NCBI GenBank assembly: GCA_000708835.1
Contig: DF237754.1
Location: 1-32,374, forward strand
DNA length: 32,374 bases
Direction of reading: 5' to 3'
Origin: Klebsormidium nitens
Lineage: Eukaryota > Plantae > Klebsormidiophyceae
Shown here: piece after piece, positions 7,178 through 32,374 of the stretch
Layout of the letters: each line of letters starts with the position of its first letter
Numbering within the stretch: position 1 is the stretch's first letter
Program-made: the position numbers and the translations under genes
Notes under the pieces: generated by a model
Seen by the model: the letters and a program-made list of their open reading frames with translations, nothing else
What the model was told of the DNA's origin: nothing
Database searches by the model: none

Positions 7178-8275
7178 ATGAGCAAGGATGCGTCGGCCAT
7201 TTTGGCCCGGAGCAAGGCCGAGCTCTTGGCCGTCAAAGACCGTCTGAAGGAATGGGATCGAAGCGGGCTGAGCCAAGAACCCAAACGCCCTGCACGGTCG
7301 AACGAGATGGTGAGTGATGCGCGGTTCCAGCCGAAGGAGTCCTCAGAGTACTTTTAAGGACGAAAGGGTCCAGATCCGACAACTTTCGACGAGATGGGGA
7401 CGGCGCTCTCTACGCCAGTCCTATCTCATCAATCCGTTCGAGCTCCTAAACTGGAGCAGTAAACTGACCTTGATCGACGATTGGCAATTGCTGGAGAAGG
7501 TGTTCGTCAAGGCATTCGACGATCAGGGTCGGAAGTACCCAATCGACTTCGACCGGGCCTTCGTCTGACTCAAGTATGGGAGGAGAGGAAATGCCCTGCG
7601 GACCAGGAGGACTTCTTCACGAATGACGCAGATTGCACCGTCAACGCGTCAACCTGGCATGGTTCTCAGGAATAATGCGTCGGGTGCATTTGCTAGATAC
7701 AACCCCGATTGATACTTCCTCGCGACCACGGCGTTCAAGCACTTCGCCATGCAAGCCCGGACGGAGGCTGGCGGCGTGGTCGTTCGAAACTTCTTCGTGG
7801 CAATCCGCGACGCATACGTCGAGCTAACCGCAATTTCTACCAGTGGCCGACCTAGCTTGACGAGGGAGGCGGCCCTTTTGATGGCGTACCACGAGAAGAA
7901 CTGCATCTACGTGGGCACAATCCAGGCAAGAGGGCAGGGAGGAAGGCGCATGTGCAAGTTTGGAAGGACCACCGACCTTGCCAGCCGGTGTGCTGCGAAT
8001 CAAGCATCGTTCAAAAATCCATTTGAGCTGCTCCATTTCGCCGAAGTGGAGAATTGCGAGCGTGCCGAGCGCGTATTGAAGACTTGCCGGAGATCCGTCC
8101 GAAACTCCATCGGACCACCATCCACGGGATCGAAAAGAAGGATGAGTTTGTGACTCTTGGTAGCCTCGCTGCCAGGAAGATGGAAGCCAGTCTGAAAAGG
8201 GCGGCACAGAGGTCGGTGTCTGCAGTCTTGCGAATGACCGTTCGTGACAAGAGAAGGTGGGAGAAGATGGTGTAG
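7178..8275 (+). pseudogene. Decayed AntA/MSV199-like DNA-binding + T5orf172 (GIY-YIG-like) gene, with a probable intron at 7310-7418
   Basis: YPIDFDRAFV*LKYGRRGNALR and AFKHFAMQARTEAG..VRNFF resemble viral antirepressor-like N-termini. CIYVG..KFGRTTDLASR..FELLHFAEVENCERAERVLK is T5orf172-like. In-frame TGA at 7566 and 7710, frameshift at ~8090. Phase-0 donor ATG|GTGAGT and acceptor CCAG|TCC match. Confidence 0.7.
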
Positions 8276-9085
8276 CCTTGCATCCATCCGGAGTAGGGAA
8301 AGTTCGAACTTGATCACGAGTGGAGGATGCGTGTGTACGACGATATCATACTCAATTCCCGGGGCCGAGGAAATAGAAGCGGATTTGTTTTTAAACCCGT
8401 GCACATAGGTAATTGTCCAAATATTTGTTACGACATTAGTGATATGTAGCGTGAGCATTCGATTTTCAGTTCAACATTTACAACATGAAAAAAAGTCGCA
8501 GAAATATCGTACAGGGGCGATATGATTTGATTTCCTTGCGGATTGAAATTTCACTTGACCGTGTGCAAACATGAAAGTTAGAGTTCGAGGTTAACTAGAT
8601 TGCTATGGAGCATCAAGAATTCCGTTTTGGAATTGTATACGATTTGTCACATTTATTTCTCGAAATACCGCACTTTATTTCTTACCTTTCCTACTCCTTT
8701 TCATGCATAATATCTGTTGTCACAATCGAATGAAGTGTTTTACATCTCTTGCATATATCACAAATGATCTCACATTTATTTGCAAATGAATAATATCACA
8801 TCCAACATCTGTTACTTCCCATTATATGTGCATTTGTGGATGGAAACTACTATATGTTTACTTACATTACAACTCGTCAATTCTTTCAAAAATTACCCTC
8901 GTATTATACAAGGTTAATTGACCTACCTAACGTGAGTTTGCGGATTGATATAACAAAACTAAAATGAAACAAACGACCTTGCAAAATATGGTATACGCAA
9001 CTATCTAGAGCGAAAAGGCAATACAAAAAGGCAGTTGTCCCGCAAATGACAATATCTTCACCTAACCATCGACTTTTCCATCAGC

Positions 9086-11202
9086 TTAAACCGGCACACA
9101 TGCTGGAGCCGCACCTAGTCCAACACCACATTGAAAGCTTGGCGCACACTTGAACAATAGCGAAGTGCTTGAAGCCTGGCAGTTGCACACACCTCTGCAT
9201 GAAGGGACAGTAAAGATAAGCAAAAAAACACTAATTTCTTTATGACATTTCCAATCACAATTTTCTTGGTAAAGAGATATCGTATGCTTGCAGTATGATT
9301 TCCGCTTCATTGAAGTTCCTACATCTCAAATGAATGAGCATGCAAAAAATGTACAAGAAACAAATGTGACATAATGAAAGCACAATTTTGCAAACGGAAG
9401 AGAACTAACATCTCAGAAGATTGGGTGAAGCAAAACTACTTACTGTGCGGACTTGCTGCAATAGAAGTTCTCTCCATTGCAGTTTGGTGCAGTTTCACCC
9501 TTACTGGGTGGTGGGGCGTTGTTACAGTCAGGACTGTTCACATCTGGGGGGGTTTGAGTGACAATGTTGACCAATTCTCCTCCAGCAATTTGAATGTCGT
9601 CAATCTCGTTGTCGACAAGACCATTTGTTTCATTCACCTGCGATATGCAGAAATCAGTTGTGTCGTTTGTGTCGTCGGTGTCGTTATGTCAACGTATTCA
9701 GCGACAAGTTGAGCATGTACAACAACCAAGAACCTGATACTGAAACTTCCTCGACAATAAATACATCTTTGACGAAGCCGATTCGGAAAAGTCTAAACCA
9801 GGTCTCACCGATGGTCTCACCAATGGGTTCATTCCCCTGCAATATGAGGACTTCAATGAAAAAAAGTATTTCAACAGATCAAATGCCGAGCCTGTACAAC
9901 TAAAAGAATCAAACTGAGACTTCATCTAAAATTCTTGACAATAATTACAGCATAGCAGTCAGTCAAGATAAACAGAAAAGGAAGAACTTTATTCAAATCA
10001 TCCTGATCGTAGGTACAATGCCATGTATATTTCCAGACTGTTAACACACCTTCAACTAAGTTACCAAATGTTGACAACCTGCCTATTGCATCAACTGAAA
10101 AGGGAAGTAGGCCGACTCAGAGTTTTGTTATGATTGCTCAGGGTTGGCCGTATTGCTCAGGGGCAAACAGTCAGAGAATTAAAGACTTTGAAGGATTATA
10201 TGCAAGGTCTGGCATAGGTGTTGGCAGCACCTCAAGAATTATCAGCATCTACCCTATAATATTCATAATAAGTCTACCAGGGATCATTTTAATACCGTCG
10301 ACCATGTAACATTCATAGCGCTCGTAAAGCAAATAACTTACAAGGTTCGATGTGCCATTGCGGAGGTCGCCGTAACCCGCAAGTAAGGCGTTGAGTGTAG
10401 TGTTCACTTGCAGCAGCATTCGGCGGGGTGCTGAACTGTGGGTGACCATCCATGCGTAGACATTTTCAGAAGACTGCAGCAGAGAAAAGTACACCACCAC
10501 ATCTCACCAATCTCTAGCAGCCAGCGTGAGAGTTGATGTCTGCACAGGTTCTTACTAAACGTAATAACCTTCAGGCAAGCACACGTGCTGAAAACAGCAA
10601 GAGAAAAGGAATTATTCATTCAGGATCCATAAACGATCAAAGACTTCTTTCCTGTGCGACATGCAGCATTCGAGTCCTGACTTCTTACTAGCATTGGAGG
10701 AAGGTGACTGAGAAATTGATGTGACCCGAGCTGATGAGAACAGAAGAGTGATTGAAGCAGCTATGAAATGTAAGAGCCATGATCCATCGCAAAGCATCTA
10801 GCTCCCTCAGAAAGGCAGGCTCATAAAAAGATTGAAACATGCCTTTGATAAAGGAACTACAGCTGGCTAGACAACACCAAAACTCATTAAACTACAGAGT
10901 TGTTTGTCTTGATAGTCCTCAGAAACTTGCAAGGCATTAATAATATGCAGTAACACAGCATGGTCCTATCGCGCTTCGAACATCTCCTCACTGGCTGCTT
11001 CTCCAAAAGAGCAGCAACAAGTGAGTCACAACATATCTGCGGTGGTCTGCAAAACGCAGGCATTTATCCGGAACAGCCTGCATCATGAGATTCCAAGCAT
11101 GATTCTCACCGGTTTCTCCAGTGGCACAGCAGCACTGCTAGCAGCCCCCAGGCAGGCTGCAAGGAGGCAGAAGAGAAATATAGGACGGGCGGACAGCACC
11201 AT
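9086..11202 (-). CDS. Probable multi-exon host-type gene for a secreted protein with a Cys-rich C-terminus; middle exons unresolved
   Basis: Exon 11202-11110 encodes signal-peptide-like MVLSARPIFLFCLLAACLGAASSAAVPLEKP and ends at a GTGAGA donor. Exons 9637-9444 and 9194-9086 splice in phase 2 to give ...DCNNAPPPSKGETAPNCNGENFYCSKSAQGVCNCQ...FKCAPSFQCGVGLGAAPACVPV*. A further candidate exon at ~10475-10345 ends in GTAAGT. Confidence 0.35.
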
Positions 11203-12084: not shown

Positions 12085-12560
12085 GGCGCCACGTGGGCCC
12101 CCCCTGCCGGTGTCCCTGCAAACCACTTGAAGTTCGCCATAAAAACCAGCCGCGCGATGGGCGCCACCTGTTCCCCCTGGCCCGACTCCGCAGCAAACCA
12201 TTTGAAGTTTCATCATAAAAACCAGCCGCGCAATGGCCGCCGCGTGTCCCCCCGGGCCCGGGACCCCAGCAAACCATTTGAAGTTTCAACCAGCCGCGCA
12301 ATGGCCGCCGCATGTCCCCCCGGGCCCGGGACCCCAGCAAACCATTTGAAGTTTCACCATAAAAACCAGCCGCGCAATGGGCGCCACGTGTCCCCCCAGG
12401 CCCGGGACTTCAGCAAACCATTTGAAGTTCAGCATAGAAACCAGCCGCGCGAAAGGCGCCACCTGTTCCCCCTGGCCCGACTCCTGCAGCAAACCAAATG
12501 AAATCACACAAAAATCAGCCGCGCGATGGCCGCCACCTGTTCCCCCCTCCCCGCGACCCC
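12085..12560. repeat. GC-rich tandem repeat, about six units of ~72-76 bp
   Basis: CAGCCGCGC-(G/A)ATGG-type motif recurs near 12145, 12220, 12290, 12365, 12440 and 12515, mostly preceded by CAAACCA(T/C)TTGAAGTT. Confidence 0.85.
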
Positions 12561-16347: not shown

Positions 16348-16765
16348 TGTCCAAGTGTCCAAGGTTTTGCCAAACTCTTTTGGGGGAACATTCTGCTGAC
16401 GTCATTGCAACAGTTTATTGACGACACGTCAACAAAGTCAGGACAATGAGACAATCTAGATATCTGCCTCAGTGTCTTGATGCTGCCGTCACTTTCTTCA
16501 GAGGACAACCTAGGTTCGATACACTGTCCACATGTCCAAGGTTTTACCAAACTTTCTGGGGGGATTTCTTTGCCGACGTCAGCGCTCCAGTTCCTCAACG
16601 GCTCTTCTGCAGAATCCGGCCCACCGGACGGTCCATATAATTGCTTACGCTTTGGCGTTCCGAGTGCTTTCGACAGTTCCTTTCAGAGACGAGGCTCGAT
16701 ACAACTGTGTCCATGTGTCCAAGGTTTTACCAAACTTTCCAGGGAGATTTCTTTTGCTGACGTCA
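16348..16765 (+). repeat. Three dispersed bipartite TGTCCAAG-dimer/TGACGTCA elements in intron 16227-16847
   Basis: Dimers start at 16348, 16525 and 16708; (T/C)GACGTCA starts at 16397, 16574 and 16758 (offsets 49, 49, 50). Confidence 0.8.
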
Positions 16766-19159
16766 CCTTTTCTTCCGGCAGTGGGGCATACTTGAGTGCC
16801 TTCGATCAAGAGCAGGCTGATCTAAAATCCCTCTCTTCTCCCTGCAGAGACCGAGCCCATCTATCGAAGATTCTGTACCGGCAATCGATCCCGTCCTGGC
16901 CGCCGCTTCTGCACCGGCAATCGACCCTGTCCTGGCCGCCGCTCATCATTTCCACAGCCTCGGCGTTGTAACAGTCACCCACGACCTTTTCGAGAAGAAG
17001 TTTCCAAACGGTCAAGTCCGGAAGCAGCCGTGCAACTGGGGCTCCGAGTCCAAGCCTTGGAAGGAGGCAAACCTCGGCAACTGCCTCCAGGAGTTCGCCA
17101 AGTCGGGGCGCAACTCCATTGCCATCATCACGGAGCAATCGGACATCTATGCCCTCGACGTTGACGACAAGGACGGGGGCTTTGAAGCACTCGAGCAAAT
17201 GCTCGAGGAGCATGGAGGGTTTCTGGAGGACACGCCCCGAGTACTGACGGGGAATGGGGGGGTGCACATCCTCTTCTCTCTGTCTCTGTCCGAGAAGGCC
17301 GGCCTGTGCAACTCCGGCAACAAGGCAAAGATTCGGTACAAGGGCAAAGCGGTAGGCATCGACGTCCGTGGAAGGGGAGGAATGCTGTACACCGCACCCA
17401 GCAGCTACACAGGCCTCGACGGCACGCTGCGCTGCTACAAGTGGGACCACGAGATTCTGCCCGACCGCTCCAACCTCCGAGCCGCGCCGGACTGGCTCAT
17501 CTGCATCCTAAACGGCAGTGATGGACCGCCAAGCGGGAGTGCGGCGGTGCGTCAGGACGAGAACGGGGCCCGGTACGCTCAATTTCCCTTGTGCCCCCAC
17601 AAGATGACGATTCTGGTTACATGACATCCAAGAAACTTGATTGCCTGATTGAATATTGTGGGTCCCAATCATCAAGCGATCTGAGCAAAGCTAAGATGCG
17701 TCGAGAAGTACTGGCGCTTTCCTTGATGTATATAGAAACCAACTGAATTATTTATAGCGCTCTTCGAAGATGGTGCAGACGCTAAGGTAGCCGGGTCTGG
17801 GTTTCAGGGTCACTGGTTCGAAACCTTCAACGACTCTGGTCTTTTCCCTTTTTGGGCGACCACTACATCCACAGTATATGGAAAAGTTTGCGAATAGAAG
17901 TTCAGTGCAGTGATCTTGGCGCAGAGGCTAGAGTAGTGGACCTGTGTAATAAAGGTCACTGGCTCGAGCCTTCGAGGAAATCAATCCTCGATGTGTCCAG
18001 CCTTTTTGCTCAGCGAATGTGCAGGCCACCTTCTGACTTCGGGAACCAAGAATATCGAAGCAGCCCGTTTTGGATGGCAAGACCAACAAGTTTCTACCTA
18101 GAACAGAATCAGATTCGACAGCTTGGTCGAGCTTTCGAGTCAGTCGAACTTGGATCAGAATTCTCCTGCCCCTTCTTAACGCACAGTAAGAGCAATGAAG
18201 CTTGCTATTGTTGAGATCAGGCTCCACTGCAACGGAAATACCCAGATTCGGCATGACAAATCGGCGTCAGCATGCAATCGTCTGCTTTTCCAGTCACCTA
18301 TCCATGATGATGCCAGCAAGTTTGTTTATGTACGTAACGAGCTTCTAGACTGATACTAATTGCTTCATCCCTCGGCCTGCTCTATACATTCTAGGCCTAA
18401 TTCAGCCGGTCTAAGGCATGCTTCTGCTCACGCAATCTGTTCTTGTAAACACGATTACAGCCGTATGTCTTCTGGCTCTGAGATCGAAATATTATCTTGT
18501 TCTCCTGTGCAGGGGCTCGCAGGCTGTACCTTTCGGACCTCCTCGTCCTGTCGAAGGCCCTCAGCCAACTCCCCCAGCAGCGGTCTTGGAGCGCGTCAAG
18601 GCCTGTGTGGCTGCCACGGGCGACACCGCCTCCAGCTTCGATCGCCTCAAGATGGGCGACAGCGGGCCAATGTACGTCTTCCGGGTGGCTGGCCCGCGTT
18701 GCTGCCCGTACGGCAACCACCACAATGGTTCCAACAACTTCTCCGTGCTCGTGCGCAAGAAGGATCTGCTCTATTACTGCAACAGCTCGGAGTGCCAAGG
18801 GGTCCGCCCTCTGCTCAAGATCGGGGAGCTCACGCGCTCAGAGGCGGTGATTGAGGCGAGACCCGGGCTTTCAGTACTGATGACGTCAGCGCGATCAACG
18901 GCCTGCACAAGACATTCGTGGACGCCTGGGCCTTCGAAGGAGACGTGGGCGGCAGCAAGATTGTCGCTGAGATGTACGCAAGCTGCAGCAGGTGAGAACT
19001 TTACGAGATACACAAGAAGTCACTGAAGCAAGACGTTTAGAGGGCCTTTCAGAACGTCGACGGCTCATGGAGAGCACACGCCAGCCCTGGAACGGATCTT
19101 CTGGTAGTGCTCTGTCAGCGGCGGTCTGATGTCATTCGAAAGGGTCCCGTCTTAGCGTG

Positions 19160-19299
19160 TGTCCAAGTGTCCAAAGTCTACCACCAACTTTCCGCGACCA
19201 TCGATTGCTGACGTCATCGAAAATTTTCGGCCAGTCTCCGGTTGTCCGGGTGTCCAAGGTTCATTGCACACTTCTCGCGGCCGCCGGATGCTGACGTCA
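19160..19299 (+). repeat. Two bipartite TGTCCAAG-dimer/TGACGTCA elements in intron 18992-19471
   Basis: Dimers start at 19160 and 19243; TGACGTCA starts at 19209 and 19292 (offset 49 in both). Confidence 0.8.
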
Positions 19300-21760
19300 T
19301 CATCGTGCTCTGAGGCCGTGTTGGAAACACTTTCAACCGCCAATCTGAACTGTTGGGACACGAAACTGGAAACGCAGAAATGATAGACCTTCTACGAACG
19401 CTGTCGAGACTCGTGTGAATCAAGATCTTACTTTTCTTACAAGGGCATATCGTATATCTGCTCTTCTGCAGGCTGCGTTTCGATGGAGAAAGCTGGTGGT
19501 ATTGGAATGGGAGGCGCTTCGTGCGCGACGAGAAGAGCGCCTTCTATGTGAAGAACGTGCTCATCAATCAGCTCAGGACCGTCTACGCGCGGGTGAGGGA
19601 CGAGTGGAAGGCATCTATCGAGAGAAACACCGACGAGAAGGAGCAAGAGGCGTTGATGGAGCAGCTCAAGCGCCTGCGCACCTACAACAACAGCCGAAAA
19701 ATCACCAGTACGCTGGAACTCCTCCGCGGGGAGTTGGTCGATTTCGACTTTGCTCAGCAGCTGGATGCAGATCCGGACATCTTGAACGTAAAGAATGGAG
19801 TGCTCCTTCTGAGGACCGGCGAGCTCGATGTGCACCGGCCCCAGTACATGTGCTCCAAGATCGCGGAGACGGACTTCATGGTAAGCTGCCTATGCTGATT
19901 CAAAGAAACCCGAGCAACTTGCTTCTTTGACTAGCTAACACGCAACGAGAGCTGGCGGACCGTTCATGGAAGATGCTTTCTGTCTAATCACAAGAATCCG
20001 AGCGTTGACAGCTGCACGCGGGCTTTGCCATTGAATCCTCTAACAGCTTCCGAGTCATGTGTTTCCGTCTTGGCACTAGTGTGCATACTTTAGGATGCTT
20101 GAAGACGTGCTGTGATGCCATTTCTCTTGCGCTCAGGAAGGCAAGGAGTTGACTCGTTCCATCCATCAAGTGTGCCGATCACTTCTTGCAGGGGATGGAG
20201 TTTCCCACTCCGCGCATGGACGCCTTTATAGGCGACATCTTCAACCACGACGCTGAGCTGGTCGACTACGTACGGAAGCTGTTCGGCTACGCCCTCAATG
20301 GCCATACGCGGGAGGAGGTCTTCGTGCTCTTGCTCGGAAAGGGAGGTAAAGTCACTATCTTCTTGGTCTTGGATGCAAGACCTAGTGGAAGTGTGCAAGT
20401 AAAAATCCGGGGAGTTCCAGATGCCTCCAATCTTACATTGAGGTACGTGCTTCTCCAGCGCCGCGGGCGTCGGATCTGGCGATGTGGGAAAGAAGTCGAT
20501 CAACCACTGCTCCTGCATATTGGCCTAACAATTGACATGATTCTACAAGCTGGTCTTGAGCATCAACCCACATGGACGAACCGCGGTTGCTTCTCGGTGG
20601 GGCCGGTCCAACACTCACTTATTGCCGATACCTCAACCTGATCTTGTGCATTAATCCTTCTGCAGGAAATGGAAAGGGTGCCCTGAAGGAGATGCTGCAA
20701 GCTGTGGCCGGTGATTACTACGGCACCATGTCCAAGGACGCGGTTGTTACGGCACCTGGCCAGAGGGCCCCCTCTAAGAACGCGCCTACAAACTACCTTT
20801 ACGAGTTGATGGGCAAGCGGCTTGCAATCACTGACGAGACGGCGGAGGGGGAGCAAGTGGACCTCGGTCTCGTCTTGGCGGTGACGGAGGGCGGCTCAAT
20901 AAAAGCGCGGTGCCTCTACATTAACAACGTCGAGTTTGTTGTTACGCACACACCGTTTGTGCAGACAAATTACCCTCCTGTGATCTCCGCGACAGCGATC
21001 TTGGACAACGTCGAGCGCCGACTGCGAGCGATCCCGTTCCCCAACACCTACGTTAGAGCAAACGCTTTTGACCCCACGAACGCAACCCACCGCCTCAGAG
21101 ACGACAACTTGAAGGGACGCATGAAGGAAGAGGAGTCGCGTCGGCAGATCCTTACTTGGTTAGCGCGCGGCTCGGTGGAGTGGTACGCCAGTGCAGAGGG
21201 ACTTGGTTCTCCCCCCAAGGCCGTGAAGGATGCAACGGACGAGTACCTGCGTGAAGCGGACAAATTCCAGCTGTTCATCGACCAACACTGCGAGGTCGGA
21301 GAAGGATTGTCGACACTGCAGGCCGAATTCGCGGCCTGCTATGCGCAGTATTCCACCGAGAGGATCTCGTATGAGGAGTTGAGGAGGAGGATGGATACGA
21401 AAGGATTCAAGAGGGCCAAGAACAATGATTCGCCACGGCAGTTCTACTATCCGAGGATTAGGTGCTCTTACACTACTTAATACGATTTGTTGCTTGTGCA
21501 GTTCAAGAAAGATGGTAACGACAAAGTGGCTAGCGATGCAAGCCGGACATTGGACGAGCTTCGTATTCTCTTGTTACACTAGTAGGACTCCATTTGTACA
21601 TTCTCCGCAAGAGTTGTGATTGGCACTTGTTGAATTGAATCAATGTGTAATGACGATACTTGTATCGTCGAGGCTCAACAACCACGATCCCGTTCAACGA
21701 TTGCCATGATGATGTTATCAACAGATGTGTCGATTGAAAGTTTCTGCTTGGCCTGATGAA

Positions 21761-22243
21761 TGACGTCAGCGATTCATGACCATGAAAAGTTTGTGCCGGA
21801 GCTTGGACACTTGGACAGTCGTGAGCCGGAGACAGGCCCGCGCTCTGATGACGTCAGCGATGAGCGCCCGCGAAAACTTTGTGCCGGAACTTGGACACTT
21901 GGACACCGCTGATCCGAGGCATGCCCGCGCTCGGATTCGGACGTCAGCCGTGAGCGACCGGAAAAAGTTTTGCACCCGAGCTTGGACACTTGGACAGTCT
22001 CAAGCCGAGACAGGCCCGCGCACCGATGACGTCAGCGATGAGCGACCGCAAAAAGTTTTTGCGCCAGAGCTTGGACACTTGGACACCGCGAAGCCGAGAC
22101 GGCCCCTGGCTCCGATGACGTCAGTGACGAGCGACCAGACCTTGGACACTTGGACAGTTTCAAGCCGAGACAGGACCGCGCTCCGATGACGTCAGCAATG
22201 AGCGACCGCGAAAAGTTTGTGCCAAAGCTTGGACACTTGGACA
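21761..22243 (-). repeat. Array A: six ~88-bp bipartite units, reverse orientation
   Basis: CTTGGACACTTGGACA at 21802, 21890, 21981, 22070, 22141 and 22228, each preceded by TGACGTCA or a one-base variant. Confidence 0.95.
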
Positions 22244-22384
22244 ATTTCTGCACTCAATCGGGCACCGGCACATGCAACAGGATTGATTGCTCGCAAGCAC
22301 GCATTGATGCAGGATCGATACACGGTCAATATCAATGCATGTAGCCACGGTCACAAGGTTATGTTTGCAGTGGCTCGAGCGTCT

Positions 22385-23782
22385 CTAGTTCGTATCTCGC
22401 GCTACGTATCGCTTGTACGCCTTGGAGTTCTTAAACCTGGGCTCAAGATTCTCCTCAATCCATCTCCTCCGGGACTCTTCTAGCTCTCGATGCGCGCGCT
22501 CTAGTTCCGTCTTATATCTTCCAAAGTCCAGAAGATATTTGCGGTACTCATTGATGAGTGCGCATTCTTCGTTCATCCATGCCTTCCACGGCATGCCGCC
22601 AGATTTTTGGGCGATGAAGCCGGGTTTAAATCGCCTGTCGTACAAAGGGCCAAAGAGCTCCGTAGCGTAGCGAGCCATCGTCTCGTCTCGGTTCAAGCCG
22701 CCAACCGTGGAGCACGCAAAATGCTCGACGAATGTTTGCAGGGTCTTTGCTCTCGCCTCCTGCTGCAAAAAGAAAAATGTTGATGCTGCGGCCAGAATGC
22801 GAGATACGGTGCCGCCTCGACTTGGCAACCAAAAACGTCGATAGATGCACGCATATTGGTGATAGTGTGCACGCCGTTGGTGAATGGAACATTGCTGACT
22901 TTTACTTGCCCCCTTGCCGTGCACGATTGCTGCTCCATTCATTGAGGATGGATGTACATAGATCGTTTTCCAGTTGTTTAGAATTTTGAGCAATGTACAT
23001 CAATTACTAGAAATGTACACGAAAATCTGTCTAAAATATTGAGTGATGTACATCAATCACTAAAAATGTACACGAATCTCTGTCCAATCTGTCCAAAATA
23101 TTGAGTGATGTACATTAATCCACAAAAATGTACACGATTTTCTGTCCAAAGAGGAATATTGTTGGTCCTATGGCAAAATCGGCTGACTTGATGCTAGTAT
23201 CACCCTCCGTTGCTAGATATGGCTTGCGCTACGTACCTCAACCTTGTCAGGGTGGAAGTGCAGTGACCAAGTCTTATGGTGTAATACAATCTCGCCGCGA
23301 TCGAACATCTCCCAAGCTTTGCTCGGAAGAAGCTCGGCATCCGCGATGAGCCACGACAGGGGCGGTCGCACATACGTTGGTGCCTTTGGCATGGGTGGAG
23401 CGGGGATCGCGTTGCGAGCCATGATGCGGTACCTCGCCATATGCCGTGTTCTAAAGACAGCGCGTTCTCCATCAAGAGTGCGTCGATACTTTGAAACCGC
23501 AGCGTTGTTGCTTTGGCGCTTCAACTGACGAAAAGCTTCGGACTCCAAGCCGCAATATTTCGAGGGCGCACGATCGCTCGGAAGCTTGTAAGGCTCGCAT
23601 CCCATCCTCTCTCGGTGACCTTCCAAAGCTTGCTTCGACATGAAGCTCTTGTTGCAAATCTCGGATCCATCTTCACGGTGCCGTTCGAGGCAAATGAAGC
23701 ATCTTCCGTCCCGCTTCCAAAGCAGTGACGAAGCCGTAGTCGTTGATGCTGCGGCAACATCTGGTGGACTAACGGCAGACAT
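22385..23782 (-). CDS. Two-exon protein (~307 aa; exons 23782-23237 and 22762-22385) with a C2HC zinc finger, bZIP-like basic region, J-domain-like HPD motif and C-terminal helical region
   Basis: C-x11-C-NKSF-MSKQA-L-EG-H-x5-C; KRQSNNAAVSKYRR (N-x7-R); EIVLHHKTWSLHFHPDK aligns without gaps to the DnaJ consensus EIKKAYRKLALKYHPDK. Donor GAG|GTACGT and acceptor TTTTTGCAG|CAG are both phase 0, and the spliced frame is open. Confidence 0.65.
22986..23150. repeat. AT-rich ~52-62-bp tandem repeat (three copies) in the intron of the ZnF/bZIP-like gene
   Basis: TTGAG(C/T)(A/G)ATGTACAT(C/T)AAT...AAATGTACACGA..TCTGTC(C/T)AA repeated from ~22986, ~23039 and ~23101. Confidence 0.8.
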
Positions 23783-23962
23783 GATAAACTTTCAGCCGAG
23801 GATGATCGTAGAGAGGGCGCTCGACGAGCCCTAAACCGATCCAGCAGCAGTGACGATCCTAAATCGAACAAAGAGGGCGCCTTCAAATAGATGAATGCCA
23901 TTGTAAATCTAGATCAAGGTCGATCTGTCTTTCGATTTCTAAAGCCGTCGCGATTCACCACG

Positions 23963-24370
23963 TGTCCAAGTGTCCAAGGTCTGTGATCAACTTTTCGTGG
24001 TCGTCCATCGTTGACGTCATCCGAGCGCGGGCTTGTCTCGGTTTCGCGGTGTCCAAGTGTCCAGGGTCTGTGACCAGCTTTTCGTGGTCGTCCGTCGCTG
24101 ACGTCATCCGAGCGCGGGCTTGTCTCGGCTTCGCGGTGTCCAAGTGTCCAAGGTCTGTGACCAACTTTTCGTGGTCGTTCGTCGCTGACGTCATCCGAGC
24201 TTGGGCCTGTCTCGGCTTCGCGGTGTCCAAGTGTCCAAGGTCTGTGACCAACTTTTCGTGGTCGTCCGTCGCTGACGTCATCCGAGCTTGGGCCTCTTTC
24301 GGCTTCACGGTGTCCAAGTGTCCAAAGTCTAGCACAAAACTTTTCTTGGTCGCCCCTCGCGGACGTCATC
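23963..24370 (+). repeat. Array B: five 87-bp bipartite units, inverted relative to array A
   Basis: TGTCCAAGTGTCCA(A/G) at 23963, 24050, 24137, 24224 and 24311 (exact 87-nt period), each followed 49 nt later by TGACGTCA (GGACGTCA in the last unit). Confidence 0.95.
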
Positions 24371-24430
24371 AGTCTCAATTGTCATTCAGCCCCTTATCTA
24401 AGCACTTGCAAATCACCTTGAGGCTCTGCA

Positions 24431-24925
24431 TCAGTTCGATTCTGACTGTGATTCAGAATTTGAATCGACAGATTCTGCTCTCTTTCTCGGAGCCGCCTTC
24501 TTTCCAACGCTTTTCTTTGTGGTGGTCTTGCTAGTCGTTTTTGCCCTTGAAACCTTCTTTGAAGCACTCATACTCTCGATGTCTTCGATTTCCATCTTTG
24601 TAGGTGTACTCTGAAAGGTGCCCTCAAATGGCAAACCTGTCGGGCGATTACTTTTCATCACCGGACCGATCTCAACCGAGTATCCATACTTCTTGTTTAA
24701 TGAACCTCGTGTGGTTTCTTGTATAAGGACAACTACCCTCTGTGGGAGCGAAACGTTCTTCCCTTGGCACTTCTGAGTCCGAAATAGTTGCGATCCTGCT
24801 CGGGCCCCTGCTTGACAAACGCGCCCTTTCTTTGCATCGATTTCAAGTCGTGTATCCTTCAACAAAGCGAGGGCATCATTCCCCTTTGCATCGTAGGCAG
24901 CAATCACTCGAAAGCTTCGTTTCAT
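24431..24925 (-). CDS. MC1-like non-histone chromosomal protein with a Lys-rich C-terminal tail (~164 aa)
   Basis: MKRSFRVIAAYDAKGN..KKGRVCQAGARAGSQL..VLIQETTRGSLNKKYGYSVE..KSNRPTGLP parallels, from memory, archaeal MC1 (RNFVLRDEDGN..GKQPRQAALKAA..IRLRERGTKKVHVF..KNRPAWMP) and the giant-virus MC1-type ETTRGS motif. Tail KKVSRAKTTSKTTTKKSVGKKAAPRKR. Intronless. Confidence 0.7.
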   Translation of the reverse strand: MKRSFRVIAAYDAKGNDALALLKDTRLEIDAKKGRVCQAGARAGSQLFRTQKCQGKNVSLPQRVVVLIQETTRGSLNKKYGYSVEIGPVMKSNRPTGLPFEGTFQSTPTKMEIEDIESMSASKKVSRAKTTSKTTTKKSVGKKAAPRKRAESVDSNSESQSESN

Positions 24926-25106
24926 GCATTCCATATTGGATGACCTGGTGCACTTCTGATGATAGGTTTGTAGAAAATAATAACTCCGCCCCCTAATGCA
25001 TATCTGACTGTGCGGATTCAACAATCTCAGCCGCAACCAAGAACATGGAGTGCATATGGTGTAAATTGCACGCGGAGAGACAGGAAAAAAGTGTCAAATG
25101 CCTTTT

Positions 25107-25145
25107 GAATAACTAGTTATTCTCCTCAGAAATCTCGAGATTTCT
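25107..25145. promoter_or_regulatory. Two adjacent perfect palindromes upstream of the MC1-like gene
   Basis: GAATAACTAGTTATTC (25107-25122, 16 bp) and AGAAATCTCGAGATTTCT (25128-25145, 18 bp). Function is inferred only. Confidence 0.4.
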
Positions 25146-25228
25146 CAACAATTTTCGGCCCCCCGCACGCAGTTTCAAGAAAATAAGCGTTTAGGAGAGG
25201 TTTCGATGTCATTTTATTGTGACCGACC

Positions 25229-25921
25229 NNNNNNNNNNNNNNNNNNNNNNNNNNNNNNNNNNNNNNNNNNNNNNNNNNNNNNNNNNNNNNNNNNNNNNNN
25301 NNNNNNNNNNNNNNNNNNNNNNNNNNNNNNNNNNNNNNNNNNNNNNNNNNNNNNNNNNNNNNNNNNNNNNNNNNNNNNNNNNNNNNNNNNNNNNNNNNNN
25401 NNNNNNNNNNNNNNNNNNNNNNNNNNNNNNNNNNNNNNNNNNNNNNNNNNNNNNNNNNNNNNNNNNNNNNNNNNNNNNNNNNNNNNNNNNNNNNNNNNNN
25501 NNNNNNNNNNNNNNNNNNNNNNNNNNNNNNNNNNNNNNNNNNNNNNNNNNNNNNNNNNNNNNNNNNNNNNNNNNNNNNNNNNNNNNNNNNNNNNNNNNNN
25601 NNNNNNNNNNNNNNNNNNNNNNNNNNNNNNNNNNNNNNNNNNNNNNNNNNNNNNNNNNNNNNNNNNNNNNNNNNNNNNNNNNNNNNNNNNNNNNNNNNNN
25701 NNNNNNNNNNNNNNNNNNNNNNNNNNNNNNNNNNNNNNNNNNNNNNNNNNNNNNNNNNNNNNNNNNNNNNNNNNNNNNNNNNNNNNNNNNNNNNNNNNNN
25801 NNNNNNNNNNNNNNNNNNNNNNNNNNNNNNNNNNNNNNNNNNNNNNNNNNNNNNNNNNNNNNNNNNNNNNNNNNNNNNNNNNNNNNNNNNNNNNNNNNNN
25901 NNNNNNNNNNNNNNNNNNNNN
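25229..25921. other. Assembly gap (N run)
   Basis: Run of N; ORFs spanning it are artefacts. Confidence 1.
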
Positions 25922-26555
25922 CGACTCGGAAGAGTAATTATGCAGCCCCTTTTGCTATTCTTGCTTCCGGACAAACGCAATCGGCTTACTCGAAGTACAT
26001 GCAGAGGATGAAGCCGACCGAGGAGGAGCTCGATCATTCTATGCAGAGGAAAACGCCGAAGGAAGTCGACAATTGGATTCCTTGGTCCGAGCTCTTGGAA
26101 AAGCGATCGGAACTCGACGATCAGATCAACCGCTATGTCGTGCCGAGATTCATTAACAAGGAACGCTTGGATCGCCATGATAAGCAGTTGGTGATGGATC
26201 ATCTGATCCTCTCACTATACACGATGCCGCTGGGACCTTTGCGAAATGAATACGCGGAATGCATCTTTTTCATGAGGGATCACGAGAATGATTGCGTTGC
26301 GATCAAACCGGGTGACATCAACGTCGTCGAGTTGAAGGACGATCCCAAGCAGTGTTTCTTTCACATCGGTCGACACAAGACCCTCGAAAAGGATGGAGTT
26401 CGGCGCCTTGAAATTCCCGAGGATCTCGTAAAGGTTATACTCAGATCCTTCAATCTGATTCCTAGAAAACATTTGATCCTTAAGAGGCATTATCTCGTCT
26501 GGAAAGATGAACCGATATCGAACTTCACCGTAGTTCTCAACGACCTTGGTCAGCA
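25922..26555 (+). CDS. Tyrosine recombinase, partial copy 1 (both ends lost in gaps)
   Basis: Nearly identical to 26604-27391 but with substitutions (RYVVPRFINK vs RYIVPRFLNK; MRDHENDCVAIKPGDI vs MKEHENDRVTIKSGDV). Confidence 0.75.
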
Positions 26556-26603
26556 NNNNNNNNNNNNNNNNNNNNNNNNNNNNNNNNNNNNNNNNNNNNN
26601 NNN
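26556..26603. other. Assembly gap (48 N)
   Basis: Run of N. Confidence 1.
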
Positions 26604-27391
26604 CGAAGAGTAATTATGCAGCCCCTTTTGCTATTCTTGCTTCCGGACAAACGCAATCGGCTTACTCGAAGTACATGCAGAGGATGAAGCCAACCGAGGA
26701 GGAGCTCGATCATTCTATGCAGAGGAAAACGCCGAAGGAAGTCGACAATTGGATTCCTTGGTCCGAGCTCTTGGAAAAGCGATCGGAACTCGACGATCAG
26801 ATCAACCGCTATATCGTGCCGAGATTCCTTAACAAGGAACGCTTGGATCGCCATGATAAGCAGTTGGTGATGGATCATCTGATCCTCTCACTATACACAA
26901 TGCCGCTGGGACCTTTGCGAAATGAATATGCGGAATGCATCTTTTTCATGAAGGAACACGAGAATGATCGTGTTACGATCAAATCCGGTGACGTCAACGT
27001 CGTCGAGTTGAAGGACGATCCCAAGCAGTGTTTCTTTCACATCGGTCGACACAAGACCCTCGAAAAGGATGGAGTTCGGCGCCTTGAAATTCCCGAGGAT
27101 CTCGTAAAGGTTATACTCAGATCCTTCAATCTGATTCCTAGAAAACATTTGATCCTTAAGAGGCATTATCTCGTCTGGAAAGATGAACCGATATCGAACT
27201 TCACCGTAGTTCTCAACGACCTTGGTCAGCGCCATTTCGGTAGAAATCTTAGCTGCACTCTGCTTCGACACATCTCACATACTGAACAGAGTCCAAAGCT
27301 GATGTCTCGTGGTGAAGTGAGAGCAAAGGCACAATACATGGGCCAAAGCATGAGGACTGCGGATGAGCTCTATAATAGACGATTCGAATGA
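26604..27391 (+). CDS. Tyrosine recombinase/integrase of the virus-associated type, copy 2 (5' end in gap)
   Basis: Catalytic signature LYTMPLGPLRNEY (R), IGRHKT (K), CTLLRHI (R) and MGQSMRTADELY (Y nucleophile, with Q at the usual H/W position). Intronless. Confidence 0.8.
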
Positions 27392-27487
27392 GTGGGCAAT
27401 TCTCTTCTTTCTGTACTTTGTGTGCGTTCTCTGAGGAGCAATTTTTCTATGTTAGAGTTATCAGGAGGCATCAACTGCACTCCAGCT

Positions 27488-27877
27488 ATGGAATCGACGA
27501 ATCACAAACATGGATCGACCACGTGTGCTGCTTGTCTCGAGGCGAGCATCTATAAGGACGAGCATCAGGCCAAGAAGAGAGAATATTCGAAGAGTTACTA
27601 TCAGATACATAAAGACGAGATCCTCTTGAAGAAGGCTCTTGAACGATTGCGAAGGGAAGCAAGACAAGCAGACGGACGAGGCAGCGACTTTATGAGGCAC
27701 AGGCTGCTCTTCCTTGGATTCGATCGTACTAGACAATTACACCTCTTTGCAAGCGTGGGCTCCGTCGAGAGCCGCGTTCCATGTCAAAAAATTTCTGGGG
27801 TTGGAAATATAAGGGGGCTCCGAACCTCCTTCGGTCTGTGGAAAGCATGGCAACGAATTCGATTGCGCACGTGTTAG
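27488..27877 (+). CDS. Small hypothetical protein with CxxC and a basic/aromatic helix
   Basis: TCAACLEAS..KKREYSKSYYQIHKDEILLKK resembles the EYxKxYYxxNKEKI-type helices of small DNA-virus proteins. It sits between the recombinase and primase 3. The C-terminal half is doubtful. Confidence 0.4.
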   Translation: MESTNHKHGSTTCAACLEASIYKDEHQAKKREYSKSYYQIHKDEILLKKALERLRREARQADGRGSDFMRHRLLFLGFDRTRQLHLFASVGSVESRVPCQKISGVGNIRGLRTSFGLWKAWQRIRLRTC

Positions 27878-30695
27878 AAGCGTATGCACAAGAAGGACTA
27901 TACGCTATCCCGGCAAAAGTTAAAGCAACGGACGAAGGATCGAAGCACATTCTGGCAACAATGCCGCATGCGAAAGGCAATGACGCTATACGAACGGTGT
28001 CCGATTGGAGAATGGCAAGGGATCGAATCATGGAAAAGATTGAAAAAGATCGATTCAACTTTTTGGCGATAAAGACGGGAACCATTTCAGACATCTTCGT
28101 GCTCGATATAGACACACGAGACAAACCAGAAAAAGATCTCCAATCTGGCATGCCTCTCTGGAATAGATTGATTGCAGAACACGGAGAACCAGACACTTTA
28201 AGAGCCACTTCAGCCAGCGGAGGCCTCCATTACTACTTCTCGTACGGTGAATCACTCAACGAGGGACTCCAATCAGGGAAGTGTTTCGCTGGCGTAGACT
28301 ACGAGGGCCAGTATTATGGAATAGATGGGCGCGGAGACGGAGGCGTTGTTTTGGCCCCGCCAGGCTCACCTCAGATTGGATTGAATTACACTTGGTGCGC
28401 ACAACCCTTAAGGACGAACATCCGACCAGCTCCATCATGGTTGATTCGATTCCTCAACGATTCTGCTGGGAGATCCGCAAACAAAAGTCTCGTGTTGACT
28501 TCGAGCGATCGAATTCAAGAGTTGTCAGCAAACGGTGCTGATATCGAGCAAACAAGGGGGCTTGAATCAAGCACCGTCGAAGAAACAATGCGAGTGGAGG
28601 TGGATACCGATGACTCACACAATAGACAAGCAATCGAGCACAAGAGGATTGCTGATGCGATGATGCAGCTGTTACAAGACGCTGGACTCGACACGGAGGT
28701 TCGCTTCTCTGGCAACGTGACCTTCCGCGGTTCGTACGGTATTCTCTATTCATTCATCTGTGATGGTCCTCGAACCTGCATACATGGTCATCAATACACT
28801 GGTAGCAACAATCTGACTCTCGTGAAGCGAGGATGGACGGTATTCTATCGATGCTTTGGCTCTGAATGCACCGAGTTGAAGCCTCTTACGGAGCTTGGCA
28901 ACATTCCAATACCAATATCGTTGTTGGATGCCAATCCTGTACGTCTGCACCCGACTCATGATTGGAGTACCTTTCCGAATAACATAAGAACGATGTCGCA
29001 GGATGCGGTGGAAGCACACATGAATCTTATCCGGCGTAACGTGACGCAGCGCTATCGAGGCATGGCTGCGATCTTCTCGGCCATGTATCTCGTTGACGGA
29101 CGCATCATTGCTGAGGGCAAACGCTTTCACTACTGGAACGGTCGCAGATGGATAATCGATAACGCGTTCCATATACAAACCGTCTTTAGTAACCACATGG
29201 CTCGTATCATGACCTGGTATTCGAAACAGAGATTGAATGCTTTCAAGCATGAGATTTGCGCACATATGAGAGGCTCTGCAACAGAGCAGAACGTGTTATC
29301 AACGCTAGAGTCAGTCCTTCCAAATTGGGCAATGAACCCAACGACCGAAGAAGAAAGAAAAGCATGCAGCACCGCGTGGAGGGTGGTCAACAAAACGTAT
29401 CCGTTCCCAACGAAGAGGGATCTGGTTGATCTGACACGGGGATCGGAGGTTCGTGTATGTCTCGAATTTGTATGAACTCCTTGCAGGCTCCTCAACCTCT
29501 CAGCGAGATGATGGATATTGCCAATCCGTTCTTGTTTGCGTGTGCGAACGGCGTCATTAACACCGAGACCGGAAAGTTGCTCGCATTTGATCCTGCTCAT
29601 CTGTTTTCACGCGCGTCGAAAGCAACTTTTCGTGGAATGCCAAAGGCCGAAAGCCGATTCGAGAGGTTCCTGCTTGATTGCTTCAACGATGACAGAGAAG
29701 TACTCGAATGGTATCAGCTTTTCTGCGGCTATTGTATGATGGCGGATACGAGTGAACAATTGTTCCTAGTCAAGCAAGGCAATGGAGCTAATGGAAAGTC
29801 CTTGACAAAGCTAGCAAGTCTCGAAGTTCTAGGCAGTTACGCTGTCGTTATGTCAGAAGACTGCATCATCGAGGCCGGTAAACGGTCCGCTGGCGCGGCT
29901 TCGAGCCACATAATGGCTCTTCGGGGCGGGCGGCTCGCTGAGACCGACGAGTCGGGAGAGAAAGCAGTCCTGAATGAGGCCGCAATGAAAGCCCTATCAA
30001 GCGGGGGAACCACTACAGGGCGCGAGCTGCATAGCAGACAAGAGACATTCGAGCTCACTGTGAAGACCGTCCTCAACACGAACTACAAGCCTATTCTTCA
30101 GAACGTATCCTACTGTGTCACTCGACGCTTGGCACTACTTCCGATGTTGGTCACTTTCTTACCTCCCGAAAAGCTCGAATCCAGCAAACCACGCCCGAAG
30201 CTTATCGATACAACCCTGGAAACCTACTTGAAAAGCGACCAAGGTCGAGATGAGGGTCTTTCATGGTACGCAAAGGGAGCAAGACGTTATCATGAACTCA
30301 AGCGAGCAAATCCCAACACGCTACCATTGATGCGCAGACCTCGTGTGATGGAAGAAGCCGTTAGAGCATACATCAACGACTCGGATATCGCTAGGCGATG
30401 GATCGTCGATTGTCTCGAATTCGAAGATATACAACCCGGAGAAAGAGCGACATGGCACTTAGCCGTTGGCGAACAGCTCGGAGAGGTGTTCCGAGCTTGG
30501 TTGAAGGAAGAAGACTTGACTAGCTCCTTGTCGGCAACGGCGCTGAAAAAACGCATCTTAGATTATGCTGAAGGAAAGAATCGGGTGGTTGTAGACGGCC
30601 GCTTCACAAACAGCCAAGTACAATCTCGAGGTCAGTTCAAAGGCCTTTCGGGGGTTCGATTGAAATCTGGCTATGAATCTCATGCATTGGAGTAG
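27847..30695 (+). pseudogene. Primase-helicase 3: intronless Prim-Pol + Zn-ribbon + D5/P4-family SF3 helicase, with one frameshift at ~29470
   Basis: IFVLDIDT, SASGGLHYYF, GIDGRGDGGVVLAPPGS; RTCIHGHQYTGSNNL..YRCFGSEC; FHYWNGRRW; FACANGVINTETGKL; Walker A GNGANGKS; RLAETDE; TGRELHS; LNTNYKP; TRRL. Adding one T to GAATTTGTATG joins ORFs 27781-29475 and 29457-30695. The start may be 27781 or 27847. Confidence 0.9.
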
Positions 30696-30764
30696 GTGTC
30701 GACGGGCAGAGCAAGCGCTTGCATGCAGAGGAGAACTTTAGAACTTGTGAGTTGTTTGTTTGTT

Positions 30765-30802
30765 TGGTCTTATGGTCTGCAGACCAAAAGTCTATAAGAC
30801 CA
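30765..30802. other. Nested inverted repeat just downstream of primase-helicase 3
   Basis: TGGTCTTAT (30765-30773) / ATAAGACCA (30794-30802) arms enclose the perfect palindrome GGTCTGCAGACC (30774-30785). Confidence 0.55.
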
Positions 30803-31092
30803 CGATTTCAAGTGTTTTCGATTTTAGAAATCTCTAGGGGCCATGATTGCTGTAATAGAAAAGACCTAGAATCCGGGTCTTCTGGGCTTCTGGTCTGCGG
30901 CCCCATCCAAGCACGATTATGCCTCTGACACAAGTACCCTTCTCGTTTGCACCAAAGTGGTATAGCTTCTTCTAATGATAACGAACACACATTGAATGCA
31001 CATTCGATGCTGTTGGAATATGCATGAAGCATATGATGAAACGTACAAGTCATGGTAACTTCTCAATCAGTGTCTTTGTTTCAACAGGGTCT

Positions 31093-32374
31093 TTAGTACA
31101 TCAAGAGCCGCTGCCGTACAGCCGGTTCCCACGTGTCCGCTCTGCCCGCAATTCGCAGCTTTGGGGCGTCAACTCGTGTGAGGTCGCTATTCCGTCCGCT
31201 GATCAGGTTAGCAAGGATGATCATGAACGCAACGAGGCTACTATACCAAGCTTGCGTCTTGAAGCTCACGAGGAACGCGTTGCACGACTCCGCTGCTGAG
31301 GTGTTGACCCAACACACAGAGTCGTAGTAGTCTACACGTGATCCATACGGAGATTGAATTAGTTCAGCATAGAAAAGCCTTGAGACATGGCGTTGTAGAA
31401 GAATGCCACATATATATACACTCTTGAAAGGCAGTCCAAACTTGCCTCCTTTTTCTTTAGAAGAGAGAGGGCGTTTTTGACTGAGTCACTCTAAATCCGC
31501 TCCTTTGCACACACATTCGAGATGGGCGGCCACTTCGAGCAGGATTAACGCACATGTGCCTTGCAAATGCATCAGGGTCTCACCTGTGTTGTATGATGGA
31601 CCACACTTGTGTGCCTCGGCGGTTGTGTGGTGGAAATGGAATCTGCAAAGATCAAGCACGAATGAGAATAAAAAATGTATAGCAGTGCACAGCTGAGGAA
31701 AGTCGCAATGCTGTATGGCAATGGCACGGAAGATCACAAGAATGACTCTCAACAAGAGCCGCCCCTTGGCTTGCGCAAATCTTCTGACCTTACCTATCGA
31801 TCAGGAACCGAACGTCTGCAAAGAACGCTGGCTCTCTCCGCATCGCGTAGGCACGCAGCTTGCAGGCGTTGTCGTGGATGAGGTACAGAGGAAGATCTCT
31901 CCGATTGAGCCGCGTGTACAGGACGGTGAAGGGGTCTCGCGGCGACTCCCCGCGGAGCATGACGTGGAAGCCATAGATGACACAATGAGGGCACGAGAAA
32001 ACGAAGCCGCCCTTTGTGTGCCGTTGCAGGCATTTTTTCTTCTTTATCCCGCTTTCGAGAGCGACCTTGGCATCGAATTCACCGACGGTGAGCCCGCTCC
32101 GACACCGGTGCTCCTCGTCGCGCTCGCGAGACCTACCGAGATCGTCTTCGAACGGTTCGTACTGCGGGAGAGGGCGTTTTTGCTCCCATCCTGGAAGCGG
32201 GTAGCAGCCTAGCTCTCGTTGCTCACGGCAGTAGGGATGGTCCCGGGGAAGAGGGCCAGGCTCCGATCCGTCCACCTCGAGACCGAGCCTTTCGTTCAAG
32301 AGGATCCGTTCCGGCGGAAGCAGGGCGTACTCGTGCGGTGCTGGAGGGGAAAGGCTTTCGACCCCGGGGAGAAG
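31093..32374 (-). mobile_element. KDZ (Kyakuja-Dileera-Zisupton)-type transposase, spliced, 5' end beyond the window. Exons >32374-31794, 31642-31584, 31331-31093.
   Basis: GFVFSCPHCVIYGFHVMLRGESPRD, LIHDNACKL, FLIDR|FHFHHTTAEAHKCGPSYN and NTSAAESCNAFL match the KDZ catalytic pattern (D-N-A-C, DRFH..H..C, N-T/S-x-x-x-E). Introns are GT-AG with matching phases (2,1). Confidence 0.8.

Follow-up and report, generated by a model that had tools for sequence, protein, structure and literature searches.

Scaffold DF237754.1 of the streptophyte alga Klebsormidium nitens, analysed here over its entire length of 32,374 bp (the window), raises the question of why a single gene, KFL_008050050, lies between two tandem repeat arrays of the same family placed in opposite orientation, and whether the protein that it encodes acts on these arrays. 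The best reading of the data is that the arrays, A and B, would function as enhancer or origin elements resembling the homologous regions (hrs) of baculoviruses, and that the gene would encode a DNA-binding regulator belonging to the same element. We consider this reading evenly balanced between right and wrong, an estimate that includes the view that the window would be part of a multi-copy, intron-bearing, virus-like element of K. nitens with several D5/P4-type primase-helicase genes. The inverted bracket around the gene is not a designed unit, unlike the self-contained module envisaged in a preliminary description made from the sequence alone, but the product of an inversion of the gene relative to ten other independent loci.

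A dispersed family of composite repeat modules

Array A (21760..22243, plus strand) comprises six composite modules in irregular units of 88/89/71 bp and points to the 3' end of the target gene, and array B (23962..24370, minus strand) comprises five modules in 87-bp units and points to its 5' end. Tandem Repeats Finder described array A as two overlapping tracts (21760-22136, period 88, 4.2 copies; 22064-22207, period 71) and array B as a single one (23962-24370, period 87, 4.7 copies, 91% matches). At least 25 inverted pairs of 33-118 nt, 75-89% complementary, were found between both arrays in a repeat search, confirming that they belong to one family of about 87 bp in opposite orientation. 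Each module consists of the palindrome TGACGTCA, a cyclic AMP response element (CRE), followed by AAAAG and by a GGACAC-NN-GGACA pair (a direct TGTCCA pair). The CRE is perfect in five of the six modules of array A and replaced by GGACGTCA in the remaining one, every copy being followed by TTGGACACTTGGACA, and it is perfect in four of the five modules of array B. A CpG is contained in the CRE, and the inverted arrays could give rise to hairpin transcripts. Both motifs are strongly enriched in the window, with 16 copies of TGACGTCA against 0.65 expected (a number reached in none of 100 shuffles) and 16 copies of TTGGACACTTGGACA, allowing up to two mismatches, against 0.05 expected.

Further members of the family were detected outside the bracket. 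Three single modules, about 180 bp apart, are dispersed upstream of the second Prim-Pol coding region (16348..16765, minus strand), and two more lie between the D5_N and helicase parts of the upstream primase-helicase (19160..19299, minus strand). The window thus carries several dispersed intergenic sites of one repeat family, at 16.3-16.8, 19.2, 21.8-22.2 and 24.0-24.4 kb.

Homologues of the encoded protein led to twelve further loci, which correspond to ten separate, independent places (contigs of the JGI metagenomes 3300060284 and 3300060285, together with four scaffolds from K. nitens), giving 11 independent loci with the window included. At least two arrays per locus were found within the relatives. 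Unit lengths range from 87 to 132 bp over the loci (100, 103, 105, 113, 118 and 132 bp in the relatives) and spacer sequences differ too, the blocks retained by the relatives' arrays being (T)GACGTCA, the AAAAG block and GGACAC-NN-GGACA. Across six loci, the start-to-start distance from the CRE to the GGACA block is 43-46 bp in 36 of 39 CRE-bearing modules. A palindromic version of the module was observed in K. nitens DF237765.1 (locus L017, 6205-6532), where a 132-bp unit holds a single TGACGTCA between two inward-facing GGACA pairs.

Since most unit lengths are not multiples of three, the arrays are non-coding. The idea of coding repeats was rejected because this holds for the units of array A and of most related arrays; open reading frames (ORFs) do cross the arrays in several frames, yet the units are conserved only at their motifs. 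When public sequences were scanned for the composite module, 17 single matches were obtained in the metagenome collection, approximately the estimated chance level, and none in IMG/VR, and the target gene accompanied none of these matches.

The closest analogue of this layout is the baculovirus hr system with its transactivator IE1. Baculovirus hrs form dispersed arrays, each unit of which contains a viral factor's site together with CRE- and TRE-type (phorbol ester response element) sites for host bZIP proteins; they function as enhancers and as putative origins (PMC13513840). Shared features are the dispersed intergenic position of the arrays, units of about 70-130 bp, a DNA-virus-type genome, an identity that is high within arrays and lower between arrays, and composite sites that include bZIP sites of the CRE/TRE type. 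The arrays described here differ from hrs in that they contain no 30-bp imperfect palindrome, the second block being the direct TGTCCA pair 43-46 bp from the CRE; moreover, the host is a streptophyte alga, spliceosomal introns are present, no IE1 homologue was found, and the function of the arrays is predicted by analogy. The arrays are members of a dispersed, non-coding family, and by this likeness they would be hr-like cis elements. A bZIP-type dimer, supplied by the host or by the element itself, would recognise the CRE, and a second factor the TGTCCA pair.

Syntenic loci and the inverted orientation of the gene

Where neighbouring sequence is available, the gene order in the relatives is primase-helicase, array, target gene, 185-aa ORF, 350-aa ORF and primase-helicase, all on one strand. 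The target gene occupies the same syntenic position, between D5/P4-type primase-helicase genes, in all 11 independent loci. In tblastx comparisons with L001 and L002, the window is collinear to the left and right of the target gene, which alone is found on the opposite strand; indeed, its orientation is opposite to that of the window in ten out of ten other independent loci. A full module or array lies at most 1 kb upstream of the gene, always in the same orientation (CRE, GGACA pair, ATG), in seven of the 11 loci: the window, by means of array B, and L001, L002, L005, L007, L017 and L018. In L009, a GGACA pair alone occurs about 2 kb upstream. Array B therefore has the position and orientation of the upstream array of the related loci, and in the other ten loci arrays near the target gene, where they occur, are restricted to its upstream side. 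The expectation of the preliminary description that homologues would be flanked by arrays thus holds for the upstream side in these seven loci, whereas the two-sided inverted bracket is unique to the window.

The opposite gene orientation together with the upstream-only arrays of the other loci indicates that the bracket is derived and results from a lineage-specific inversion. The target gene is inverted in the window: array B, its normal upstream array, still adjoins the 5' end, and array A lies at the 3' end. In relatives, it is the helicase ORF that is bracketed by oppositely oriented arrays, and the window retains such a bracket, formed by the 19.2-kb modules and array A. The identical unit phase at the gene-facing ends of both arrays fits recombination between two arrays better than the random split of one, yet no relative with a downstream array was found.

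These observations bear directly on the earlier proposal of a self-contained module or foldback-like cassette, whose bZIP-like J-domain protein would bind its own inverted arrays and aid helicase loading. The inverted arrays and the conserved protein motifs on which it was built are real, the gene always adjoins primase-helicase genes, and both a weak J-like signal at the HPD motif and the UniRef name of a paralogue, described below, would agree with it. Nevertheless, the two-sided bracket is confined to one locus, the other ten having upstream arrays or none, all copies are syntenic, and the repeat family occupies other intergenic sites as well, including those around the helicase ORF of the relatives. 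The sequences bounding the arrays (GCTTGGC before the left end and TCTCAATT after the right end) share no target-site duplication. The cassette part of the proposal is thus largely refuted, and since the protein has no bZIP or DnaJ match in Pfam, no match in the Protein Data Bank (PDB) and no J fold in AlphaFold models, we regard the proposal as a whole as very unlikely.

A programmed invertible switch, operated by a recombinase-like ORF of the element or by homologous recombination, would also place the gene between inverted repeats. The segment does occur in both orientations among relatives, the inward-pointing arrays with their common end phase would leave an array at the 5' end of the gene either way, and a possible tyrosine-recombinase-like ORF is located close by. 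Such a switch is highly improbable, given that the inverted state was found in one of 11 loci, the others being without a downstream array, that the arms are only 75-89% alike, and that the recombinase assignment is sub-threshold (Phage_int_SAM_1 against the 350-aa ORF, Pfam E = 0.0077). Barely credible is an assembly artefact of this gap-containing scaffold. Two N runs interrupt it (25230-25921 and about 26555-26605), the second of them flanked by segments that are 99% identical (25929-26228 and 26605-26904), and the recombinase-like ORF appears twice, which is probably a scaffolding artefact in itself. The two arrays, however, differ by about 20%, which makes confusion of their reads implausible, and both junctions of the inverted segment coincide with boundaries between unique and array sequence.

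The encoded protein and its candidate binding sites

The interval between the arrays contains a single gene of two exons on the minus strand, encoding 307 amino acids, as had been predicted, and the splice junction between HPDKVE and QEARAK is that of the NCBI model KFL_008050050. Exon 1 (23782..23237) encodes residues 1-182, with a Cys/His finger, a basic N-x7-R segment, a Pro-rich linker and a segment reaching to HPDKVE. The only intron (23236..22763) is of the GT...AG type (GTACGT...TTGCAG), and exon 2 (22762..22385) encodes residues 183-307 and the stop codon, including the post-HPD segment, the block YATELF...RFKPG...GMLWRAWL and a long C-terminal helix. The 5' flank from array B to the ATG (23783..23961, minus strand) presumably contains the core promoter, to judge by its position. 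An identical gene structure was found in a second spliced K. nitens paralogue, P0027 (KFL_008160030), and the intron, placed after HPDKVE, keeps its codon position in every locus for which exon 2 is available. Pairwise dN/dS values (ratios of nonsynonymous to synonymous substitution rates) among spliced copies range from 0.12 to 0.34, indicating that the gene is under purifying selection and functional.

The protein family is a small one. An exhaustive profile search of 1.84 billion representatives gave 22 matches, 16 of them below 1e-10 and all of these from Klebsormidium or from metagenome, Logan and ENA sources; C2H2 finger arrays made up the weak tail, and neither bZIP nor DnaJ proteins were among the matches. 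No relatives of the exon-1 profile were found in the metagenome contig collection or in IMG/VR, and sequence and profile searches of Pfam, PHROGs, NCBIfam and PDB returned nothing above threshold for the target protein. In 20 homologues, the near-invariant residues are S91, N92, A95, V96, K98, Y99 and R100, and H177, D179 and K180. The first group belongs to the conserved segment K-R-Q-S-N-x-A-A-V-S-K-Y-R, which is followed by a conserved Gly, a second basic stretch and the Pro-rich linker; further conservation extends over PPISWL...W-S-L-x-F-H-P-D-K-V-E and, in exon 2, over E-E-H-L-R-R-F-V-x-H-F, YATELF..RFKPG..GMLWRAWL and the long helix. The preliminary description had staked its interpretation on the conservation of N-x7-R and HPD, and both are kept in about 20 homologues, so that it was not refuted on this point.

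Two segments of exon 1 suggest nucleic acid binding. The first is a C2HC-type zinc-finger-like segment (23597..23698, minus strand; C32, H36, C43-x12-H56-x5-C62). The Cys/His pattern that had led to the proposal of a finger is indeed conserved, with the core C43-x3-F-x5-L-x2-H56-x5-C62, although the first ligand, C32, lies 10 residues upstream and not 2-4; the Pfam match to zf-C2H2_6, on the other hand, falls short of the cut-off of 25 bits (18.7 bits, E = 0.0017), with weak tails to C2H2 arrays and Sal-like 3. The second is the conserved basic segment KRQSNNAAVSKYRRTLDGERAVFRTRHMARYR (23414..23527, minus strand), whose N92-x7-R100, inside KRQSNNAAVSKYRR, recalls the basic region of bZIP proteins; near-invariant positions in the 20 homologues are N, A(+3), V(+4), K(+6), Y(+7) and R(+8), in what is a motif-level match only. 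Likewise at the motif level only, N-x2-A-V-x-K-x-R agrees at five positions with the N-N-I-A-V-R-K-S-R of C/EBP.

A zipper does not follow the basic motif, in agreement with the preliminary description: R100 is succeeded by TLDG(conserved Gly105)ERAVFRTRHMARYRIMARNAIPAPP, which has no heptad leucines, and the Pro-rich linker begins about 27 residues past the motif, a region over which AlphaFold builds no continuous helix. Membership of the bZIP family did not survive scrutiny, as no bZIP family was matched in Pfam at E <= 0.1 and no bZIP chain in PDB at E <= 10, either by profile or with the 42-aa segment. The protein is thus not a bZIP family member and has at most a bZIP-like basic motif. 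In Skn-1, a bZIP-like basic region is functional without a zipper; for the target protein, neither profile nor structural support was obtained. A viral precedent for such a protein is provided by Zta/BZLF1 of Epstein-Barr virus and K-bZIP of Kaposi's sarcoma-associated herpesvirus, origin-binding bZIPs acting at oriLyt, in which the coiled coil is contiguous with the basic region. The proposed common features would be a virus-encoded basic-region protein, AP-1/CRE-like sites, repeat-rich elements serving transcription and lytic replication, and helicase-primase neighbours; the differences are the conserved Gly 5 residues past the motif, the Pro-rich linker and the failure of bZIP profile searches.

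The long C-terminal helix (22391..22591, minus strand; residues ~240-306) is the only confidently modelled part of the protein (predicted local distance difference test, pLDDT, 81-93), overall pLDDT being 57 for P0020 and 54 for P0027 from shallow alignments. It represents a possible coiled-coil region that could dimerise the regulator. A Foldseek comparison of the low-confidence model with PDB gave no meaningful match.

A second cluster of motifs was found within the gene itself. The intron contains 62-bp tandem repeats (22975..23149) with TGTACA within the palindrome TGATGTACATCA, plus TTGGACA motifs. In nine of nine loci examined, the intron holds one to seven copies of TGTACA, usually as CGTGTACAT and accompanied by TTGGACA, at a density 12-69 fold above the rest of each locus (introns at L001 10472-10815, L005 10541-10876, L007 10541-10898, L009 10541-11030 and L011 10559-10717). 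Since it is present even in L011, which has no CRE arrays, the association of the cluster with the gene is closer than that of the arrays, and the cluster emerges as a second candidate binding target of the encoded protein. In the preferred reading, therefore, the target gene would encode the conserved regulator of the element, its Cys/His finger and basic segment most likely binding DNA, with the upstream array and the intronic TGTACA/TTGGACA cluster as candidate targets.

The HPDK motif (residues 177-180; 23243..23254, minus strand) stands directly before the exon junction. H177, D179 and K180 are conserved in at least 90% of the homologues, one copy having HTD. The HPDK motif of the preliminary description is thus confirmed by its conservation, whereas its J-domain register received weak support: hhalign of the correctly spliced family against 124 J domains (a shallow profile, mostly of close DnaJ relatives) gave a score of 26.7 (P = 1.1e-3, probability 20%) over 26 columns only, in HPD register, and one of 150 column shuffles with HPDK held fixed reached this score (mean 17.9 +/- 2.5). 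The UniRef label of P0027, 'J domain-containing protein', points in the same direction. J-domain membership as originally stated could not be upheld, as Pfam DnaJ (PF00226) does not match the spliced models P0020 and P0027 even at E <= 10, and AlphaFold models the pre-HPD segment as hairpin or coil at pLDDT <50, with no helix II, and a helix after HPD. The assignment is suggestive and unconfirmed, and the HPD-containing segment may or may not be a J-like contact for Hsp70.

Polyomavirus large T antigen joins a J domain to an origin-binding domain and a superfamily 3 (SF3) helicase. The target protein shares with it HPDK followed by an acidic and then an amphipathic helix segment, in a replicon using an SF3 helicase, and differs in that the HPD protein and the helicases are separate genes and the J fold is unconfirmed. 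Taking these elements to their limit, the protein would be a new type of origin/enhancer-binding protein, in which a Cys/His finger and a bZIP-type basic region lacking a zipper are joined to a divergent J-like HPD module and a distal coiled coil, and which would bind the phased CRE/TGTCCA-pair modules and the intronic TGTACA cluster and recruit host Hsp70 to load the neighbouring D5-type primase-helicases. We consider this version quite unlikely; if true, a host-Hsp70-recruiting, array-binding protein would represent a large-T-antigen-like function split over separate genes.

Several results weigh against the preferred reading. Apart from the sub-threshold C2H2 match, the protein has no significant match to any DNA-binding family, and AlphaFold confidence is low across the basic and HPD segments. 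In L011, the protein with its N-x7-R is retained, yet there are no CRE or GGACA arrays within 10 kb, and L004 and L006 keep the protein motifs with no TGACGTCA arrays seen in the available sequence. In some arrays (L002 at 4.3-5.0 kb; L009), the CRE has decayed and the GGACA pair persists, so that the CRE is dispensable and a strict link between protein and CRE is weak. To these must be added that both arrays stop at the same unit phase on the gene-facing side, which the random split of one array does not predict, and that neither capsid nor packaging genes came to light in the stretches examined.

Some of these points favour the main rival, in which the arrays would be read by host factors only, for example host bZIPs on TGACGTCA, and the protein would have another role, for instance in RNA binding or as an accessory to replication or chromatin. 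bZIP proteins in general recognise TGACGTCA, like the CRE/TRE sites with which baculovirus hrs recruit host bZIPs (PMC13513840), and the protein, retained in the CRE-array-less L011, lacks a zipper and fails every bZIP profile test. This explanation is possible, if doubtful on balance: seven of the 11 independent loci have an array or module immediately upstream of the gene, its orientation conserved, the conserved Cys/His and basic segments are most simply understood as a nucleic-acid-binding module, and no host factor is an obvious reader of the GGACA pair or of the intronic TGTACA motifs.

The surrounding element and its neighbouring genes

Three mutually diverged Prim-Pol regions of D5-type primases were identified at 1089-2033, 16881-17624 and 27781-29472 of the window, and searches of Pfam, PHROGs and NCBIfam likewise revealed D5_N and SF3-helicase parts and a T5orf172 ORF. 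An ORF with an SF3 (P4/D5-type) helicase domain (20572..21480, plus strand), matching TIGR01613 and PHROG DNA primase families, lies immediately upstream of array A. It appears to belong to a middle primase-helicase split over several ORFs or exons (Prim-Pol at ~17 kb, D5_N at 18.4-19.9 kb and helicase at 20.6-21.5 kb). The downstream D5-type primase-helicase (27781..30695, plus strand) has Prim-Pol, D5_N and SF3 helicase over two overlapping ORFs, and is preceded by the counterpart of the relatives' 350-aa ORF (26546..27391, plus strand), for which a tyrosine-recombinase-like identity is possible on weak evidence. The Prim-Pol, D5_N and SF3 helicase architecture (Pfam, PHROGs, TIGR01613) is that of the primase-helicases of nucleocytoplasmic large DNA viruses (NCLDVs) and P4-type phages; the window differs from these in that its 32 kb contain three diverged paralogues, which introns appear to split, in stretches where capsid and packaging genes were not seen. 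The designation 'virus-like' consequently rests on the replication genes and the T5orf172 ORF, and the element may be a virus or a transposon.

This gene content accommodates an alternative in which the arrays would mainly be replication origins (iterons) for the adjacent D5/P4-type primase-helicases and the protein an origin-binding or loading accessory. The arrays do sit among primase-helicase genes, a fixed phasing of repeated sites is typical of origins, and relatives encode a UL9-like superfamily 2 helicase (Pfam Herpes_ori_bp). Modules placed at the 5' end of the gene in conserved orientation resemble promoter elements instead, and we judge a predominant origin function unlikely; it does not exclude the preferred hr-like reading, since hrs do both.

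The UL9-like helicase was observed in L011 (4591-5394) and L018 (699-9948), in the latter as part of a gene model of 1693 aa with an additional weak match to ubiquitin. The ORF at 7749-8153 of the window gave sub-threshold or borderline matches to T5orf172 and MUG113 (GIY-YIG-like); T5orf172-type domains are frequent in phages and large DNA viruses. Integration of the element in host DNA is suggested by a SNF5 fragment, which the L001/L019 contig carries about 13 kb upstream of the target gene, and by a leucine-rich repeat gene in L018. Comparison of 20572-32374 with L001, L005 and L007 showed a mosaic divergence, with 63-70% identity for the target protein, 47% for the helicase ORF, 25-29% for the recombinase-like ORF and the downstream primase-helicase, and 50-69% for the right end (31.8-32.4 kb), a pattern that suggests a replication module swap. 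The relatives' 185-aa ORF is absent from the window or hidden in an assembly gap, and a 201-aa ORF adjoining array B (24431-25036, minus strand) has no homologue in any related locus.

Elsewhere in the window, G+C content is 41-44% at 8001-11000, compared with ~50-55% over the remaining scaffold, and this part may be a different sequence compartment or an insertion. Two tandem arrays belong to families separate from that of arrays A and B: one at 4916-5527 (period 135/271 bp) contains GCTGTCCAAGCC...GCCGTCCA and also TGTCCAAG, and the other, at 12114-12560 (period 76/144 bp), is rich in G+C and strongly GC-skewed. Scanning the window for Rfam families and tRNAs gave no matches.

Earlier work reported NCLDV-like genes from K. 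flaccidum/nitens (PMC5294986), and no description of the element, the arrays or the protein was found in the literature. The one-off inversion seen here illustrates how such an event is able to mimic a designed 'module'. The phasing of the two motifs and the conserved intronic cluster provide concrete probes for electrophoretic mobility shift assays (EMSA) or DNA affinity purification sequencing (DAP-seq). Klebsormidium is a member of the algal lineage from which land plants arose, and hardly any of its virus-like elements have been described. In such an element, which bears introns and several primase-helicases, a baculovirus-type layout of dispersed composite arrays with bZIP sites would now be accompanied by a putative DNA-binding protein that is conserved, under selection and as yet unclassified.

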